Origin: Paramoeba atlantica | Lineage: Eukaryota > Protista > Discosea | Assembly: GCA_977017575.1 (NCBI GenBank) | Contig: CDRNVI010000162.1 | Coordinates: forward strand, 1 to 29,546 | Direction of reading: 5' to 3' | DNA length: 29,546 bases | In this document: positions 2,818-20,067 of the stretch, piece after piece | Layout: every line of letters begins with the position of its first letter | Position numbering within the stretch: the first letter of the stretch is position 1 | Made by a program: the position numbers and the translations under genes | The notes under the pieces: generated by a model | What the model saw: the letters and a program-made list of their open reading frames with translations, nothing else | The model's database searches: none | Told to the model about the DNA's origin: nothing

Positions 2818-3188
2818 AAATCAGATGTCGATTATCGTACATGTTCATTACATGAAAACAACATAGATACAATAAACAAGAAAGAATCATTAAAAGTATT
2901 TAATAAAATTATTATAAGATCAATAAATTTTTTTACCCAATCAAAATTAAATTGAACAATAATAAATTATATAAATAATTTTAATAAAAAACATTATATT
3001 TAATTTTACTTTTTTTCGTGGGCTATAATAAAGTGGTATAACCTTTTATTCTCAGCATTTCTTTTAGCGAGTTCCTTTAAATAATGGGAACGCTATAACG
3101 AAATGTTTCCCACGAAAAATAAGAATATATTCTATTTTATTATTATGTTTTCATGTAATGAACATGTACGATAATCAACATCGGATTT
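2818..3188. repeat. Nested inverted repeats (43-bp outer arms, 11-bp and imperfect inner stems)
   Basis: 2818-2860 is the reverse complement of 3146-3188 with 2 mismatches. tttttcgtggg 3012-3022 pairs with cccacgaaaaa 3109-3119. An inner hairpin spans 3056-3105. Confidence 0.85.
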
Positions 3189-3782
3189 GAGGTAAAAGAA
3201 CACTCAATCCTTATAGTTGCTTAATCTGTATGTTTTATTACGAAAACAATATAATAAAAAGTAAAATTAAAATAAAATGAAAATTAAAATTAAAATTTAA
3301 ATTTATTTTTAGTCGATAAATTATGTTTACCCAATTAATAATTTATGTCTAAAAATTAAAGAACAAGCATAGTTTAGTCTTATTCCGTGTTAAGTCCTCA
3401 ACCCTTAAGTCGGACTTGTCACTGCATTTTATATTCTAGCTTTATTTACTTAAAATTAACCTAAGAATAAATTTTAAAGTATAAAGCTGAATATATTCCA
3501 CTGACCCTCGACCTAGTTCATTTTTATCTTTACTTATTTTTATTTCCACAATAGCAATAGAAAAACTAATTTATTTTTTATAATTCTATTAAACTTTTTT
3601 TTATTTACTTTAGCTCCTTGAACACAACAATCCGCAAAACTAAATCTAAAAGATTAATTAAAAATTATGAAAATAAAATAGATACAAAATCAAAGTTTTT
3701 AAGCCTCGTCTTAGAATAAATAAAAACTTATCTAAATTCACCAACTCTATTTTTTATAAAAAAATATAAAAATATGAGTCGG

Positions 3783-4520
3783 ATGATTTTAGAGAGTTTA
3801 TGTTTATTCTGAAGCTCCTGTATTCATCACATGAATGTTCTGATCAGGAGTTTGTATAGGGTTTTTAACCCTACAAACCTACAGCTTCAAAACATGAATG
3901 AATTGAATAACATTTTCAATGTCCTGTGCTTACTGGCTCTGATTGGATAAATCTTATCAGATGCACAGAGCACAGTGTATTCAAATTCATCGTTCCTATT
4001 ACTCTCTGTTTCTTTGGTTCATTCTAAGTGAAGTTCTGTTGTTTGGCTCGTTACTTTACGTACTCAACTATACAAACTTAACTTCTCTTGAATTCATTCC
4101 TTTTCACTTTTTACCTTTAGAATTCTCGCAAGCGATCCTTCATTCCTTTTGCTCCTTTAATTTTGTTGCCTTCGACCTAACAAGTGTCGTGGCAAATTCT
4201 TGATTTCTTGCTGCCTCAGGCACGACAGCTAACGCTTGTCTCTACTCGATGGCCGTAAACTGGCACATCTTCGAGAACATCCATCGCCTATATTCCGTTA
4301 CATTGGCATGAATTTTCATATGCCATCAATGAACGGAATTTTATTCTTTTCCTATAACCGCTAACACAAACACCTGTTGCTCTTCCTCCATATGCCTAGA
4401 ATCTGTTCATTTCATTCATTTGATCTTAGGCTGTGGAGCCTTTTTCTGCTTAAAAAAGGAAAAAGGGGAGGCAGGTGATTTGGGGGGTAGCGGTTTGAGG
4501 ATGTGATGATTCTTGTTTAA
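3783..4520 (+). CDS. cox3: Cytochrome c oxidase subunit 3 cryptogene, kinetoplastid-type (TGA=Trp; 5' frameshift edit; pre-edited 3' domain ~4451-4520)
   Basis: With TGA=Trp the frame runs from 3793 through the homologous region without TAA/TAG (8 in-frame TGA between 3832 and 4330). It gives RVYVYS..FLWFILSEVLLFGSLLYV (Glu at 4030)..SLEF..ANSWFLAASGTTAN..HQWTEF..HFIHLILG (4408-4431). These match trypanosomatid COIII motifs FLWFIISE, INTFLLFVSGLFVN, NQVWEF and HFSHVFLG, with similar spacing. The last helix (YWHxVD) is recoverable only by U insertion. The 3' end (TAA 4518-4520) is approximate. Confidence 0.9.
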
Positions 4521-4550
4521 AAGAAAAGACGAATCATCAAAGAATAAAAG

Positions 4551-5010
4551 ATGGGAGTTTTTGTGAGATTTGTAGGAGAGTGCGATGATGTTTCAGCCTT
4601 CTGCTATCCTCATTACTAGTGATGAAGGTTACCCAATGCTTCCCACTAGTATTCGGATTCGCATCCTGCAAACACATGGATGCGATCTGATTTATTTTAG
4701 GGAGCTTCATATTAGTAATACTTGTATTTCGCTTAATTATGTTGTTATTTGGACATAATGAATTATGTTTTGATTTAATACGTATGGGCAGGGTAGAGGA
4801 ACGAGGATAGAGGGATAGAGGTAGAGGTTAGAGGTGAACGATGCAGCTGAGATAATGAGATGAGATGGTAAAGGGGAGCTTAGGTACGACACAACGAGGG
4901 CGGGAAGTTGTGTGAGTACCTGGACGCTATATTGAGGTTGGGGCGGAGATGTAGGTGAATGTGTCAAGTATGTGAGATGTGGGACGCATCGTGATGCTTC
5001 AAGGGGAGAG
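4551..5010 (+). CDS. cox2: Cytochrome c oxidase subunit 2 cryptogene (unedited core ~4586-4783; pre-edited 5' end and pre-edited C-terminal half)
   Basis: The unedited frame 4586-4783 reads WCFSLLLSSLLVMK..FASCKHMDAIWFILGSFILVILVFRLIMLLFGHNELCFDLIR. This is collinear with trypanosomatid COII (..DFISSKFIDTYWFVLG..LLRLCLLLYF..FDLCK). The following G/A-rich 4784-5010 decodes by U editing to IVGFQWYW, YLIGDLRILQ, KLWVSxVDVIHSFT, DCIPGR and YGQCSEICGxxHxxMP. The start ATG at 4551 and the end at ~5008-5010 are inferred. Confidence 0.88.
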
Positions 5011-5199
5011 ATCTGCGATTAAAAGCTGCCCATACGAAAATCAAAAAAATAACATCAAAATTTCCCAAAAATAAACAGAGTTAAATTTTATTATCACATA
5101 TTTTTTTAATACCTGTAATTTATTAAATATTTAATTACAAAAATAATTTAAAATATTATCTATAAATAACCGTATAATAAAAAATAGTAGTTAAAAAAA

Positions 5200-7430
5200 T
5201 TAAACTTAAATTAAAATTAAAATTTAAAAGTTTTAAAACTATAAATATAAATTTATAACTTATTAATCATTGAAATTAAAAAAAATTAATTTCGAAATGA
5301 TTTAAAAAGTATAAAAATTAAAAATTTAAAAGTTTAAAATTTAAAATTAAAATTTAAATTTATTTTTAGTCGATAAATTATGTTTACCCAATTAATAATT
5401 TATGTCTAAAAATTAGCAAGAAACAAGAATAAAATTAAAATCAAAATTTAACAATTTTAAAACTATAAATATAAATTTATAACTTACTAATCATTGAAAT
5501 TAAAAAAAGTAATTTCAAAATGATTTAAAAAGTATAAATTAAAAATTTAAAAGTTTAAAATTTAAAATTAAAATTTAAATTTATTTTTAGTCGATAAATT
5601 ATGTTTACCCAATTAATAATTTATGTCTAAAAATTTTTACAAAATTAGCAAAAGTAATAAATTAAAATTAAAATTTAAAAGTTTTAAAAGTATAAATTAG
5701 CTGGTACAAAAATGGTAAGTTTCTCTGCCGGAAATCCACCGAAAAGACGGTTTTTCCGGCGCAAACTCCAATTTTGTTACCAACCGGTACAAAAAGGGTA
5801 GTCTCCCTGCCGGAAATCCACCGAAAAGACGGTTTTTCCGGAGGGAACTCCCATTTTGTTACCTATAATTTATAACTTACTAATCATTGAAATTAAAAAA
5901 AATAATTTCGAAATGATTTGAAAAGTATAAATTAAAAATTTAAAAGTTTAAAATTTAAAATTAAAATTTAAATTTATTTTTAGTCGATAAATTATGTTTA
6001 CCCAATTAATAATTTATGTCTAAAAATTTTAAAGCACAAAATTAAAATTAAAATTTAAAAGTTTTAAAACTATAAATATAAATTTATAACTTACTAATCA
6101 TTGAAATTAAAAAAAATTAATTTCGAAATGATTTGAAAAGTATAAATTAAAAATTTAAAAGTTTAAAATTTAAAATTAAAATTTAAATTTATTTTTAGTC
6201 GATAAATTATGTTTACACAATTAATAATTTATGTCTAAAAATTTTAAAGAATAAAATTAAAATTAAAATTTAAAAATTTTAAAACTATAAATATAAATTT
6301 ATAACTTACTAATCATTGAAATTAAAAAAAATAATTTCGAAATGATTTGAAAAGTATAAATTAAAAATTTAAAAGTTTAAAATTTAAAATTAAAATTTAA
6401 ATTTATTTTTAGTCGATAAATTATGTTTACACAATTAATAATTTATGTCTAAAAATTTTAAAGAATAAAATTAAAATTAAAATTTAAAAATTTTAAAACT
6501 ATAAATATAAATTTATAACTTACTAATCATTGAAATTAAAAAAAATAATTTCGAAATGATTTGAAAAGTATAAATTAAAAATTTAAAAGTTTAAAATTTA
6601 AAATTGAAATTTAAATTTATTTTTAGTCGATAAATTATGTTTACACAATTAATAATTTATGTCTAAAATTTTAATTAAATAATTTTATTAAACTTTTTTT
6701 TATTTACTTTAGCTACTTGAACACTACAGTTCGCTAAACTAAATCTAAAAGATTAATTAAAAATTATAAAAATTAAAAAATAAAAAACACAAAGAATAAA
6801 ATTAAAATTAAAATTTAAAAGTTTTAAAACTATAAATATAAATTTATAACTTACTAATCATTGAAATTAAAAAAAATTAATTTCGAAATGATTTGAAAAG
6901 TATAAATTAAAAATTTAAAAGTTTAAAATTTAAAATTAAAATTTAAATTTATTTTTAGTCGATAAATTATGTTTACCCAATTAATAATTTATGTCTAAAA
7001 ATTTTAAAGAACAAAATTAAAATTAAAATTTAAAAGTTTTAAAACTATAAATATAAATTTATAACTTACTAATCATTGAAATTAAAAAAAATTAATTTCG
7101 AAATGATTTGAAAAGTATAAATTAAAAATTTAAAAGTTTAAAATTTAAAATTAAAATTTAAATTTATTTTTAGTCGGTAAATTATGTTTACACAATTAAT
7201 AATTTATGTCTAAAAATTTTAAAGAACAAAATTAAAATTAAAATTTAAAAGTTTTAAAACTATAAATATAAATTTATAACTTACTAATCATTGAAATTAA
7301 AAAAAATTAATTTCGAAATGATTTGAAAAGTATAAATTAAAAATTTAAAAGTTTAAAATTTAAAATTAAAATTTAAATTTATTTTTAGTCGATAAATTAT
7401 GTTTACCCAATTAATAATTTATGTCTAAAA
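5200..7430 (+). repeat. AT-rich tandem array of ~214-215-bp units (about 9 units, one interrupted)
   Basis: Core gtcgataaattatgtttac(c/a)caattaataatttatgtc starts at 5369, 5590, 5983, 6198, 6412, 6626, 6958, 7173 and 7388. The regular spacings are 214-215 bp. Further cores occur at 260, 465, 3312, 10903, 11142 and 11319. Confidence 0.95.
5703..5863. repeat. Pair of ~80-bp GC-richer hairpin elements inserted in the AT-rich array
   Basis: 5703-5781 and 5786-5863 share ctgccggaaatccaccgaaaagacggtttttccgg. Each folds back on itself (ggtacaaaa/ttttgttacc; ccggaaa/tttccgg). Confidence 0.85.
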
Positions 7431-10208
7431 ACTAAAGAACAAGCATAGTTTAGTCTTATTCCGTGTTAAGTCCTCAACCCTTAAGTCGGACTTGTCACTA
7501 CATTTTATATTCTAACTTTATTTACTTAAAATTAACCTAAGAATAAATTTTAGAGTATAAAGCTGAATATATTCCACTGACCCTCGACCTAGTTCATTTT
7601 TATCTTTACTTATTTTTATTTTCACAAGCACTTTTACAAGAATAGTTTAGTTTAATTCCGTGTTAAATCCTCAATCCTTAAGTCGGATTTGTCACTCCAT
7701 ATACGATCAAACTTTATTTACTTAAATTTTTACAAAGATAGTAAAATTAAAAGTATAAAGATGATCTAGCTCACCAGTTTTATTTAAATTAAAATCTTAC
7801 ACAATGATTTTATATTTATAAACTACTCGCTTCCATCGACCCTCGACCTAGTTCATTTTATCTTTACTTATTTTTATTTTCCAATATTACAGGCATTTCT
7901 TGCATAAACTCGCGTTTAAATGTGATCTTATAATAATTTTAGTTTTTTCTTAACAAAACCTATAAATATTATCCAAAATAAAAAATTTAATTTGATAATA
8001 TTGAGGTTTTTTAAGCACAAAATTAATAAAGTCACTTTAAACGGCGATTTTTGGAATTTTAGTTTTCTTAGAAAAAACATATAATATTCTCCTAAATAAA
8101 AATTTTAATTTGATAATATTGATGTTTTTTTAAACACAAAATTCACGGTTCGAACCCTTTTTGTGCACTTTTTTTGGAATTTTACCACTTTTTTCCACTT
8201 TTTTTCACTTTTTTTGTCATTTTTGCGTCAAAAAATGATTAAAAAGCAGTTAAAAATAGGGAAAAAGGGCAAAAATACGACACTTTTGAGCATAAAACAA
8301 AAAAATATGCCAACGTGTCAAAAACGTGCACCAAAGTCACTCAAGAGTGACAGGTCATTTTCCGACAAAGGAAAATTCCCTAAAAAAAAACTACCAGGTG
8401 TCGAACCCCTCAAGAAATGCTGTAATATTATTTTTTTTGCCTTCAAGATCTGGAGATCATTCATTTTTATTCTAAAGACCATCGCTTTTCGCTGTTTCGA
8501 CGAAGTCAAAGCCGTTTTGCTACCTTTTTTAATCACCTGTTTTTAATTTCTAACTTTTTTGTACCAAAGACCCCCCATTTTTCCACAAAAGAGTGCAAAA
8601 AAAAAACGGGCTCTTGGACAAGCAGTTGAAAAGTCACAGTTTTTTACTAAAAAGGTAGGAAAAAGGCACGAAAAACGACGAAAAATGAAAGAAATCCAGA
8701 AAAAACGCCAAAAAAATAATAAAACAGCATGTTTTTTGTGATTTTATGTCAAATTTCCACCATAAAACGTTGCAACACCACAAATTTCTAAAAAAAATTT
8801 GAAATTATTTGTGCTTGTCTTACGTTTTGGCTGGTGCAATTTATCATAATCGAACAAAAAACAAAAAAATTTTTCACTGATTTTTGGCGACCCGACGTTT
8901 TCGGGGCAAAAAAATACGCCAAAAAATCAAAACGTAGAAAATAAAAAAATTTGGTCTACGTTTCCTGAAGGCGTGAAAAAATTTTATCAAAAAAAATTTT
9001 TTTTTTCTCGAGCAAACGAGAAAAATCAAAAAAAAAATTGACAGGCCGTTTTGTGATGATTTTAATTTTTTGCAATTTTGGAACCACGACGATTCCTGAA
9101 GTCAATCGCAAAAACCGTTCCAAAATAATTAAAATTTCACCAAAAATCTCGAAATGCTCAATCCCATGGTGACCCCTGGGTTTTTTGATGCATACGAAAT
9201 TTTTTTTTTTGTATCTTCGGCAGGCGATTTTCGAAGATAATGAATTTTTCTCTTCTTGGCCTGGAGCCGCAAATCGTGGATTTCGACCGCGGTTCCGTTT
9301 TTTTCAAAACTAAAAAAATCTTTATTTGCACGGCAAAACTCGTATTGACAATTTCTCTTATCAGGCTTTTCCTTGATAAAGCCGAGAAATTTAAATCGAA
9401 TCACGGCAAAATCTGAGATTTTGAAACAAAATGCCTGTGAACGATTTCAATAGTTTTTGTGCAACTCTAAAAAATTTTTTAAGTCCAAAGAAACATTTTT
9501 TATTGGGAAATTAGCAGTAATTTTTGTATCACCTAAAAAAACGCCTCGCGCGTCCGTATACGGGACACATATGTGCGCTCGCGTGCGCGTATGACGTGCG
9601 TCTACTACTTTTCCTTTAATTCTGCGCCTCTCATTCGACTTTTCGCCTAACAACGGGATAGGGACAAAAAAGTGACTTGGTCTCCAGATCAAAAAATCTG
9701 GAAGTCTTTTTTGCACCCGTGTTTTCGAGAAATCTTTGATAATCGCAGACTTAAAAAGGAAAAAAAAGACATCGCGAGGTGATCAAAAAAATTACAAGCC
9801 AATCAATAACAAAATGACGAAAAATCCGCAAAAACGGACTGTCACCAATTTTTATACTTTAAAATTTTAACACCCAAAAAACCCCTGTTTTCTCGTGCTT
9901 GCACACAAGTTTATACACAAAAAAATGTAAACTTGATGAAGCAATTTTCGAGAAACCCGAGTTTTTAGTGTTTATAAAATTTCAAATAATTCCCAAATAA
10001 CCCAACTTTTTTTTACAATTTTCTGTGGAAAAATAACTGCAGACACTCGAAAATATTCTGTAAAAAAACAGTAAATTTTCCTATGAGCTCTCAGTTATTT
10101 TCCAACAGAGAATTACTAAAAAAAGTAAGGGCATTTTAGGAATTAAAAACAATAAAAAATCTTCAAATAAAAGCGTTTTTGATGGAAGAATGATAAATTT
10201 ATACTTTA

Positions 10209-11290
10209 TATATAATATTTTTTACCATATTTAATTACAAAAATAATTTAAAATATAGTTTATAAATATTATTAAAAAGTATAAATAATCTCATTCACCC
10301 TCAATAAAATTCGTATTTCATAGAAATACCTCCTGCCCGAAAAAGCGCCAAAAAGCGCTTGTTCCGGCGGAAATTCGTCCACAGTTCCCTGTTTTTACAC
10401 GATTCTGTTGGAAAATGACGGTAACACCAAAAGAGGTCCGTCATACCTAACAGAAACGGCAAAACAGGAAATGTTAAACATTTTTCCGCCGGAAAATACG
10501 TCTTTTTATCATTTTCTCGGCAGGAAATTGGGAGTCCCTTTTTAACACGATTCTGTTGGAAAATGACAGTGTAAGTCGGTAAAAAAACCTTCCTCACTTC
10601 TATTCCCAACAAAAACGGTTAAAAATGGGGTTTTAAAAATCCCAATTCCTCCGTAGAAAATCGCAAAAAAAGACTCTTTTCTGGCGTAGGAGACTCAACT
10701 GCCTGGAACACGATTCTCTTGGAAAATAGCAGTGATTAGTAACATTGGATTTTGAGCCAAAAAGCATCAAATCCATTAGTTTACAATCACTGTTAATTTC
10801 CAACAGAAACGGTCCGTCTTCTCGCCCCGAATTTTGTATAAAAAACGCTTTAAATAAGAGAATTTTTATTCGTTTTATATCAAAATTTATTTTTTATTTT
10901 TAGTCGATAAATTATGTTTACCCAATTAATAATTTATGTCTAAAAATTCAAAAAATTGAAATTAAAATTAAAATTTAAAAATTCTAAAACTATAAATATA
11001 AATTTATACTTGATATATAATATTTTTTACCATATTTAATTACAAAAATAATTTAAAATATAGTTTATAAATATTATTAAAAAGTATAAATTAAAAATTT
11101 AAAAGTTTAAAATTTAAAATTAAAATTTAAATTTATTTTTAGTCGATAAATTATGTTTACCCAATTAATAATTTATGTCTAAAAATTTAAAGGACAAAAT
11201 TAAAATTAAAATTTAAAATTATATATAATATTTTTTACCATATTTAATTACAAAAATAATTTAAAATATAGTTTATAAATATTATAAAAT
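10209..11290 (+). repeat. Second AT-rich repeat zone: ~80-bp unit (10209-10285, ~11012-11090, ~11221-11286) interleaved with 215-bp-repeat cores
   Basis: atatataatattttttaccatatttaattacaaaaataatttaaaatatagtttataaatatta occurs three times. Cores are at 10903, 11142 and 11319. Confidence 0.85.
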
Positions 11291-11869: not shown

Positions 11870-12110
11870 GTGGCAATTTGGGATAGCGAAGTAAAATTTT
11901 TAAAGTTTGCTATCGACAATTGCTCTTCTCTTTTTTATTTTGCCGCACATCGCTAATTGATCCCAATAGACGATTGCATTAAGAAAGGATCGTTAACTTC
12001 ACTATATGAACAGACATAAGATTCAGTAAGATCCATTCATATCTCTCTGCTTCTTTTAATGGCCTGTAGCATACTCCCCATTTCCACAATCCGTATGCGC
12101 TCAGACCTAT
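11870..12110 (+). rRNA. Possible divergent mitochondrial LSU rRNA domain V fragment
   Basis: Motifs occur in LSU order: GGGATAGCGAAGTAA..TATCGACAAT (11880-11920), ATCCCAAT..AAAGGATCGTT (11960-11995), TCAGACC (12101-12107). Several local stems are present, such as gatagcgaa/tttgctatc and ttgggat/atcccaa. The ACCTCGATGT core and the A-loop are poorly matched. Confidence 0.3.
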
Positions 12111-12625
12111 ATACCCGCGCCTCGTCGCGTGTGTAAGGCGTGCGCGAGATCATCGCTCACGCCGGCGCGCGTGTCCGAGTTCAGCAAGGATTTTTGCTAA
12201 AATCCGGGGGAGCTGAATCTTCTTACGCTCGCGCGAGAAAATTTTTCCAACAAAATTAATTTTCTCGTTTACGTCAAAAATCCTACAGACCAAAATTTAC
12301 TCTTTCAAATTTCCCAAAAAAAAGAAATGTAAGGTATGCCGTTTTCCGAGTGAAGGGTCTACCGGAAAGTTGGCGCCTTATCTTTCTTTTTTTGTATAAT
12401 TTTTAAGGCATTTTGGTGCCAGAGATTTTTGACAGAATTCCTGAACTCCCACGCAGGGATACGTACGCGATCGAATGACGCGCGTGAGAAGTTTTTTTTG
12501 TAGGAAGGTGACTGGCCCAAAAAAGCGGCACGCGGGCCAAGTCATTTTCCAACAAAAAAATCCATTCGCGCGCGCAGGATCCCTAACGCGGCCGGATCGT
12601 GCACGCGAGTATCCCTGAAAATTTG

Positions 12626-14390
12626 CACGATTTTATTGGAAAATTAGCAGTGTAAAAGTGGTCAAAAAAAGACTCACATTCACTGCTGATTTCCAGTAAA
12701 AACGGCAATTCGTGCGCCCTATTGGAAAACTGATAGTGCGTGGCTGTCAAAAAAGCCTGCCATCACTGTCACATTTCCTATAGTAGTTCAGTATTTTGCA
12801 TGATTTTGTAGGAAAAATAACAGTGCGTAAATTTTTATTATTCACGATTTTATTGGAAAAATAACACTACGAAAGCGATTCAAAAAAATTCGCATCAGTG
12901 TTAAATTTCCAACAAAAACGGAATAAATAAAATTACATCCCTGTTAATTTTCCAACACAAACAGCAAAATAAAGGCACTATTTTGTTGGAAAATAACAGT
13001 GAATTTTCACACGATGCTCTTGGAAAAATTACAGTGAGAAAAAAATAAGACTCACTGATTTTTCCAATAGCAAACGGTTCCAATACTGATAAATTTCCAA
13101 CAAAACATACAAAAAAAAGTGAAAAAATTGCAAATTTCCCAAATATCGGAAGTTTTACTAGATTATCTGTTGGAAATTTAACGGGTACCCTCCGAAAAAA
13201 CGCCGGGTCGACTCCGTTAGTTTTCCTACAGTCAGTAACCCTTCCTGCAAAAAAAATCGCCACCCCCGAATAAAGAATCGAATTGGCGAATTTCTTTGTG
13301 GGAAAATTAGCAGTAAAATTTTCATGTTACAATCATAAAAATGCAATAGAAAAAATTCCTTACAGGAAAATACACGGCAAAAATTGATTCCCAAATTTTT
13401 AGCCTGTGCCGGAAATTTTCTTCGTCGCTCGATTTGTTTCGGAGGCAAAAAACGAAACAAAAACGAAAATTCTACTGTAGATTTTCCTGTAAGGAAATTT
13501 TCTATTTTACATTTACAAATCCGTCAATCAGGATTTAGATTGTAAATCAAAATTTAAAATTTTTCCACACTTAATTTTTTCACTAAACTGTTGGAAAAAT
13601 GACTGTAAAAAAAATTAACAAAAATAAATTTTTTTTCTAAAAACACAGTCAATTTTACAATACAGCTAAGGGAAAAAATTAACAAGGTTTTGAAACTCTC
13701 ATCAGTAAATGTAACTGTAAATGACCTATTTTTTTATCACGTTTTTGTGTAGGAAAATTATCGCTAAAAGGCTTATAAAAAAATAACCCAATTTATAGCG
13801 TTAAGTTTCCAACAAAACGGATCAAAAAAAAGATACATACCAGTTAATTTTCCTGATAAGAGAGCAAAACCTAAATCTATTTACACGATTTTTGTTGGCA
13901 AAATCACAGTGCATGATTTTATATCTATCACGATTTTATTGGAAACATAACACTATGAAAGCGATTCAAACAAATTCGCATCAGTGTTAAATTTCCAAAA
14001 AAAACGGATCCACATAAAATACAAGCACAGTAGAAATTCCAACAAAAAACGGAAAACGATAAATTTTTTTGCACGATTTTATTGGAAAATGTAGTTATCA
14101 TAAATTTTTACTATTCACGATTTTATTGGAAAAATAACACTACGAAAGCGATTTAAAAAAATTCGCATCAGTGTTAAATTTCCAACAAAAACGGAATAAA
14201 TAAAAATAAACGATACTAACAAATTTCCAATAAATAACGGCAAAAGAAAAGGCTTTTTTGGTCCATTTTGTTGGATAAACGACAGTGTCTTGATTTATTT
14301 TAGTTTCCCGCACGATTTCTTGGAAAAATCACAGAAAACGGCCTGCAAACATAAATCAATTACAGTCAATTTCCCAACAAAATACAAAAA
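12626..14390. repeat. Dense cluster of TGGAAA..TTTCCA hairpin elements
   Basis: Successive fold-back elements with conserved arms and different interiors, e.g. 12626-12705, 12720-12784, 12843-12921, ~13019-13067 and ~13168-13231. Confidence 0.8.
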
Positions 14391-19418: not shown

Positions 19419-19878
19419 ATGGGAGTTTTTGTGAGATTTGTAGGAGAGTGCGATGATGTTTCAGCCTTCTGCTATCCTCATTACTAGTGATGAAGGTTAC
19501 CCAATGCTTCCCACTAGTATTCGGATTCGCATCCTGCAAACACATGGATGCGATCTGATTTATTTTAGGGAGCTTCATATTAGTAATACTTGTATTTCGC
19601 TTAATTATGTTGTTATTTGGACATAATGAATTATGTTTTGATTTAATACGTATGGGCAGGGTAGAGGAACGAGGATAGAGGGATAGAGGTAGAGGTTAGA
19701 GGTGAACGATGCAGCTGAGATAATGAGATGAGATGGTAAAGGGGAGCTTAGGTACGACACAACGAGGGCGGGAAGTTGTGTGAGTACCTGGACGCTATAT
19801 TGAGGTTGGGGCGGAGATGTAGGTGAATGTGTCAAGTATGTGAGATGTGGGACGCATCGTGATGCTTCAAGGGGAGAG
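19419..19878 (+). CDS. cox2: cox2 cryptogene, copy 2
   Basis: Corresponds to 4551-5010 at +14868. Confidence 0.88.
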
Positions 19879-20067
19879 ATCTGCGATTAAAAGCTGCCCA
19901 TACGAAAATCAAAAAAATAACATCAAAATTTCCCAAAAATAAACAGAGTTAAATTTTATTATCACATATTTTTTTAATACCTGTAATTTATTAAATATTT
20001 AATTACAAAAATAATTTAAAATATTATCTATAAATAACCGTATAATAAAAAATAGTAGTTAAAAAAA

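Follow-up and report, generated by a model that had tools for sequence, protein, structure and literature searches.

The window, that is, the whole 29,546-nt stretch of Paramoeba atlantica DNA that was analysed (positions 1-29546, the cox2 features below being on the forward strand), comprises a 14,868-bp unit 1.99 times over, the copies being identical (0 mismatches). Either the molecule is circular and was read round, or the units form a perfect tandem array. The best explanation of the window is a Perkinsela-type kinetoplast chromosome of 14,868 bp that carries cox3 and then cox2. The cox3-like gene appears as a long frame at 3793-~4440, with TGA read as Trp, and has after it purine-rich tracts such as occur in kinetoplastid cryptogenes; cox2 comes directly after cox3, and an rps12-like tract lies ~7 kb upstream of cox3. 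No tRNA genes were found in the window, nor did it match any Rfam family.

The unit also contains long A/T-rich 215-bp tandem repeats and many inverted repeats. One field of ~215-bp A/T-rich tandem repeats occupies 5059-7380, beginning ~12 nt past the 3' arm in the cox2 flank described below, and copies of a 300-bp dispersed repeat (408-707, 3255-3554, and 7331-7630) bound this field. The strongest long-range pairing of the unit is a perfect 31-bp inverted repeat (2830-2860 / 3146-3176, -43.7 kcal/mol), which is located upstream of cox3 and adjoins the dispersed repeat copy at 3255-3554. Many strong hairpins and inverted repeats with arms of the TTTCCA/TGGAAA type, such as TTCTGTTGGAAA and ATTTTCCAACA, are found at 12100-12700, 10300-10800, 12900-13500, and 14080-14240, and these loci could be gRNA-type cassettes.

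The gene that follows cox3 is cox2, composed of an unedited core (…FGHNELCFDLIRMG) and a purine-rich 3' domain. The never-edited core (4589-4788) is open in frame 2 with TGA as Trp (table 4) and reads …CKHMDAIWFILGSFILVILVFRLIMLLFGHNELCFDLIRMG. We take this translation to resemble the TM2 / FGH…FDL…G(F)QWYW region of COX2, where the second membrane helix leads up to the universal G-x-QWYW motif. Pieces of the core gave no match in Pfam, for which they are too short. The 3' pan-edited, purine-rich domain (4789-5019) was decoded with free placement of U. More specifically, all T's were stripped from 4781-5046 and we sought the peptides that can be reached by placing U's freely in what is left. 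On this T-stripped text, QWYW can be decoded from one site only, C4789 (4789-4797), and the copper-A (CuA) pattern GQC[ST]E.CG..H..MP can be reached at 4961-5001. When the T-stripped text was shuffled, QWYW was reachable in 158/300 cases and the CuA pattern in 6/300, so that QWYW alone is weak evidence. The identification of the gene as cox2, proposed in the initial annotation, is supported by the decoded COX2 motifs and by the layout, which is that of a Perkinsela-type cox2 cryptogene: a never-edited core flanked by 5' and 3' U-indel domains, with COX2 motifs that can be decoded only by placing U's.

The two ends of the 3' domain can be placed rather closely. At its 5' end, an AUG (4784-4786) is followed by GG and then by CAG, and QWYW falls into the FDLIRMG frame only if 1, 4 or 7 U are added between G4788 and C4789. 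Edits that keep the frame include GGG+UUUU+CAG, which gives M-G-F-Q, and GGG+U+CAG. Among these, GGU-UUU-CAG (M-G-F-Q) is presumably the best fit to COX2 at the 4788/4789 border. The edit from GGGCAG to GUUGGUUUUCAG that had been proposed earlier does not keep the upstream FDLIRMG frame and is not supported. At the 3' end, TAA at 5020-5022 is the putative stop codon of cox2; the C-terminal decoding is ambiguous, and the TAAAAG context of this codon is the same as that found after cox3 at 4517-4522.

Several searches for relatives of these reading frames and for the guide RNAs of cox2 were negative. A phmmer search with a 39-aa piece of cox2 against 1.84 billion representatives returned 0 hits, and exact look-ups of the ORFs of the window gave no match. 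The same was true of word searches with the antisense ORF 4737-4967, an 86-aa piece of cox3, and the frame-1 piece of cox2, of metagenome scans, for which the cox3 protein and a degenerate FGHNELCFDL pattern served as queries, and of comparisons with viral contigs and the PDB. For guide RNAs, a dynamic-programming (DP) search run without a known edited sequence had no specificity, controls scoring as high as the real strands. With the inferred edited text of the CuA region, a single 17-nt match was obtained, located inside a repeated arm of the TTTCCA family, and the TTTCCA/TGGAAA-type hairpin loci showed no convincing match to the inferred edited cox2 text. Nothing convincing was found either for gRNA anchors against 5000-5050 or in GU-tolerant searches of the unit.

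The feature of main interest is a complementarity between the two borders of the 3' domain. On the 5' side, arm B (UUUUGAUUU, 4768-4776) belongs to the never-edited coding text, in the codons for C-F-D-L, and arm A (CGUAUGGGCAG, 4781-4791) contains the 5'-most editing site (G4788/C4789), the next site, after G4791 (CAG^U^GG), adjoining it. On the 3' side, arm A' (CUGCCCAUACG, 5026-5036) is a G+C island (7/11) within an A-rich flank, and arm B' (AAAUCAAAA, 5038-5046) pairs with 4768-4776. Both pairs of segments are exact reverse complements, which bears out the 20-bp long-range pairing described initially: 11 + 9 Watson-Crick pairs with no G-U, separated by a 4x1 internal loop (AAUA 4777-4780 opposite A5037). 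The arms also lie where they had been said to lie. The 5' arm straddles the border between unedited and edited text, as the obligatory U's fall at G4788/C4789 and QWYW is read only from 4789, and the 3' arm begins 3 nt after the TAA that is the likely stop. The 3' pan-edited domain carries at its 5' border 24 nt whose complement is found in the first ~25 nt past the cox2 stop, and each arm comes to within 3 nt of a border of the decoded domain. A second, identical copy of the whole feature occurs at 19636-19914 (offset +14,868), with its 11-mer arms at 19649-19659 / 19894-19904.

The duplex has a predicted energy of -26.5 kcal/mol for its core and -31.4 kcal/mol with an A/U-rich extension. The arms are mutual best partners across the 14,868-bp unit, where the next best pairings reach -21.7 and -17.7 kcal/mol, and the 11-mer is present at these two places only per unit, against 0.05 expected matches. 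After dinucleotide shuffling of the 3' flank or of the 5' border, the real energy was matched in 4/5000 and 2/5000 cases (0.04-0.08%), and mononucleotide shuffles reached it in 0/1000. Judged on sequence, the complementarity is real, well placed, and statistically unusual within a Perkinsela-type cox2 cryptogene.

The simplest alternative is chance complementarity between a U-rich coding segment and an A-rich 3' flank, with one 11-mer match in the 29.5-kb window that happens to sit at the borders. Inverted repeats are indeed frequent here, the unit holding 67 perfect ones of at least 11 nt within 400 nt, and the 9-bp arm, U-rich against A-rich, comes cheaply. Nevertheless, nearly all of the 67 are A/T-only, whereas the 11-nt arm pair ties for the top G+C count among them (7/11). 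Farther out, the collinear blocks 4735-4750/5047-5062 and 4685-4702/5063-5079 do not exceed what chance would give, 796/2000 shuffles equalling them, and an inverted homology extending past the 20 bp was rejected on this ground. A gapped alignment of the two 150-nt regions is equalled by 13/2000 shuffles, and some shuffles reach -32 to -35 kcal/mol. Chance would also fit the full-length fold, from which the stem is missing, and the lack of a bracket at other domains, both described below. Against it stand the uniqueness of the 11-mer, the location of both arms at most 3 nt from the domain borders, the low frequency of equally good border-to-flank shuffles, and the fact that the two arms prefer each other to any other partner in the unit. 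Pure chance appears unlikely for this border pair, at about 1e-3 to 1e-4 by our estimate, a margin that is not overwhelming for a feature picked by eye. All in all, we consider a fortuitous match a possible, if somewhat unlikely, explanation.

The perfection of the pairing raises another alternative, namely a neutral scar at the DNA level. A template switch or a recombination junction would have placed a small inverted duplicate of 4768-4791 at the boundary between the gene cassette and the A/T-rich tandem repeats, with no role in the RNA. The fact that 20/20 pairs are Watson-Crick suits such a copy as well as it suits an RNA stem, and this counts against the stem. Likewise, the reverse complement of 5026-5046 is 4768-4791 save for the replacement of AATA by T, the element is located ~12 nt ahead of the 215-bp tandem-repeat field that starts near 5059, the molecule is rich in repeats and inverted repeats, and the kDNA of Perkinsela has been described as structurally disordered (PMC12936278). 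A random junction, however, is not expected to have break points that match the borders of an edited domain and a stop codon, and no other sign of duplication is seen around the arms. An origin of this kind is unlikely in our opinion.

Editing affects the stem less than was first thought. The initial annotation held that the pairing matches only the pre-edited RNA and that the final edits would break it. Editing does abolish the perfect match, but 17-20 of the original 20 pairs may remain, and the modelled edits cost 3-6 kcal/mol, leaving a duplex of -23.8 kcal/mol with +1 U or -20.6 kcal/mol with +4 U, compared to -26.5 kcal/mol before editing. These values bear on the suggestion that the stem is a completion switch, present only while the last block is unedited, whose loss would tell the machinery of tailing or translation, for instance, that editing of the 3' domain is finished. 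The 5'-most obligatory U insertion falls inside arm A, the next site adjoins it, and editing lowers the stability of the stem, all of which would be expected of a switch. In Trypanosoma brucei, post-editing A/U-tailing is coupled to editing status (PMC6329795), and the 5' domain of Perkinsela cox2 is edited before its 3' domain, an order which is unexplained (PMC4669381). On the other hand, -20.6 to -23.8 of the -26.5 kcal/mol are kept, with 17-20 pairs intact, so that the stem would behave as a dimmer rather than as a switch. In addition, completing the 3' domain does not complete the editing of cox2, which has a 5' domain of its own, and other domains are without such a bracket. We find a completion switch improbable.

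Whether the stem is predicted to form depends on the RNA that is folded. For RNAs starting at 4700 or 4760, RNAfold predicts that it is dominant, with P 0.99 for arm A and 0.77-0.92 for arm B, and enforcing it costs ~1 kcal/mol for RNA starts from 4625 onward. In the full pre-mRNA (start 4525-4600), its probability is P<1e-3 and its enforcement costs +7 to +12 kcal/mol; in a joint cox3+cox2 RNA, P is again <1e-3 and the cost rises to 23 kcal/mol. The stem has to compete with another helix, formed by a C/U-rich part of the cox2 core (4590-4625) and the G/A-rich beginning of the domain (4795-4830), in which 4604-4617 matches 4797-4810 at 86%. The full-length penalty is partly methodological, because the 4590-4625/4795-4830 helix would cross the bracket, forming a pseudoknot, and RNAfold forbids such crossing. 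G-rich pre-edited RNAs can furthermore form G-quadruplexes (PMC4951716), which also counts against the stem. Since the outcome depends on the context, these folding models neither confirm nor exclude the stem.

A separate observation is the strong complementarity, G-U pairs included, of purine-rich pre-edited tracts to never-edited, pyrimidine-rich coding text in their own or a neighbouring gene. This is the case for 4590-4625/4795-4830 and for 4465-4497/~4560-4600, and these pyrimidine/purine helices dominate the full-length fold predictions.

We looked for a similar bracket at four other edited-domain borders in the window (cox3 5', cox3 3', cox2 5', and the rps12-like gene) and found none. 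This counts against the stem, and a bracket as a general feature of edited domains was rejected. Local hairpins are nonetheless found at the 3' ends of the other genes. At the cox3/cox2 junction, the hairpin 4504-4539 (UGAUGAUUC…GAAUCAUCA) has an energy of -11.2 kcal/mol (z -3.0, 0/200 shuffles), with a TAA in its apical region and a 3' arm that follows the cox3 TAAAAG and folds back on the final codons. The hairpin 11872-11924, which comes right after the rps12-like cryptogene, is an imperfect 7+9 bp stem of -17.3 kcal/mol (z -2.7), with UAA in the loop. It could be that cox3, the rps12-like gene, and cox2 each have their 3' end in a duplex, cox2 by way of a distant partner. Support for this idea is weak, because local hairpins are common on this molecule, where 9-14% of 60-nt windows fold that well (z<=-3 or z<=-2.5), and we did not retain 3' hairpins as a general rule.

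Our best guess, which we put forward tentatively and from the sequence, is that the complementarity corresponds to a 3'-end or domain-closing stem in pre-edited, and partially edited, cox2 RNA. What the sequence shows is the complementarity, where it lies relative to the decoded gene, how rare it is, and the energy of the duplex with and without the modelled edits; the presence of both arms in one RNA, the formation of the stem in vivo, and any function are our inference. Such a stem would close the ~234-nt domain into a loop and would place in a duplex a 3' terminus that is otherwise unstructured, the cox2 3' flank (5020-5085) having no local structure by itself (0 kcal/mol). The most plausible job for it would be to protect or define the 3' end of the cox2 mRNA, and a related option is that it would make the 3' start site of editing less accessible. 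With the last, 5'-most U insertion, a bulge of 1-4 nt would arise in the stem, which would be weakened by ~3-6 kcal/mol and not abolished. In terms of length, the arms need 24 nt past the stop, and the total UTR of the cox2 mRNAs published for Perkinsela is only 31-80 nt (PMC4669381), which speaks against the stem.

A more elaborate version of the 3'-end or domain-closing stem can be envisaged, to which we give little credence at present. The helix would clamp both ends of the 3' pan-edited domain, hide the 3' start region, and gate editing, and the last edits would loosen it progressively, coupling editing status to the fate of the 3' end. Gated editing of this kind could explain why the 5' domain precedes the 3' domain in Perkinsela cox2. 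The ordering of separate editing domains, and the way in which finished editing is sensed before tailing and translation, are open questions in kinetoplastid mitochondria. If true, a cis helix joining the borders of a pan-edited domain in an early-branching lineage would offer a directly testable handle, made of two short arms. Should the helix be due to chance or to a DNA scar, nothing would set the locus apart from an ordinary cox2 cryptogene of the Perkinsela type.

The closest known gene is cox2 of Perkinsela CCAP1560/4, which is 486 nt long before editing, with edited regions of 55 and 227 nt (David et al. 2015, PMC4669381). Both genes have a short 5' edited region, a never-edited core of ~204 nt (4585-4788 here, 486-55-227 there), and a 3' pan-edited domain of ~230 nt coding for the CuA half. 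The gene order differs, as cox1 and cox2 share one Perkinsela scaffold and cob, rps12, and cox3 another (PMC4669381), whereas cox3 is directly followed by cox2 here. The edited fragments of CCAP1560/4 (File S3, PMC4669381) showed no alignment to the window, even after T-stripping. Together with the different gene order, this indicates that the window comes from a different lineage. The words 'inverted', 'UTR', and 'in cis' are absent from the main text of PMC4669381.

Another known system to be considered is the cis-acting guide RNA in the 3' UTR of trypanosomatid COX2, of which the present element could be a counterpart or a relic. This guide is established for T. brucei (Golden and Hajduk 2005, cited in PMC12936278), and the two elements share the same gene and the same place, just downstream of the stop, as well as complementarity to the edited region of their own mRNA. 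The known element, however, templates 4 U insertions and matches the edited text, whereas that of the Paramoeba window matches the pre-edited text, has no guiding purines, and spans a border 234 nt upstream. A guide would be anchored immediately 3' of its editing site; the pairing with 4768-4791 lies instead 5' of and across 4788/4789 and 4791/4792. A guide would also offer A or G opposite the U's to be inserted and match the edited text better; here arm A is paired with the pre-edited text in 11/11 Watson-Crick pairs, no A/G is available to template the inserted U's, and edits create a bulge. Moreover, reading on guide-wise from either arm meets mismatches at once. The repurposed cis-guide that had been suggested initially is thus rejected on sequence logic, and a cis-guide in either orientation is essentially excluded.

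The stem also bears some resemblance to structures that modulate editing. Structure around anchor-binding sites lowers the access of gRNAs (Reifur et al. 2010, PMC2923197), and in this and other examples (KREH2/HFE, PMC10359474 and PMC11514453; the A6 roadblock, PMC11754742) the substrate is structured near the start site or along the domain, as it would be here. The known structures are local stems at anchor-binding sites or products of non-canonical editing, whereas the candidate described here joins the two ends of a domain; our literature search gave no example of a genome-encoded helix that links a whole pan-edited domain end to end. A further parallel is offered by the duplex-defined 3' ends of T. 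brucei (DSS1/MPsome), where the 3'-5' exonuclease DSS1 stalls 3-4 nt before a duplex and thereby sets the 3' ends of mRNAs (Sement et al. 2018, bioRxiv 10.1101/350256). A duplex over the 3' region of cox2 would likewise stall trimming, with a potential of -26.5 kcal/mol and a formation that depends on context. The difference lies in the partner, which in T. brucei is an antisense transcript acting in trans. Here it would be a remote segment of the cox2 RNA itself, as the unit offered no strong partner other than the one in cis.
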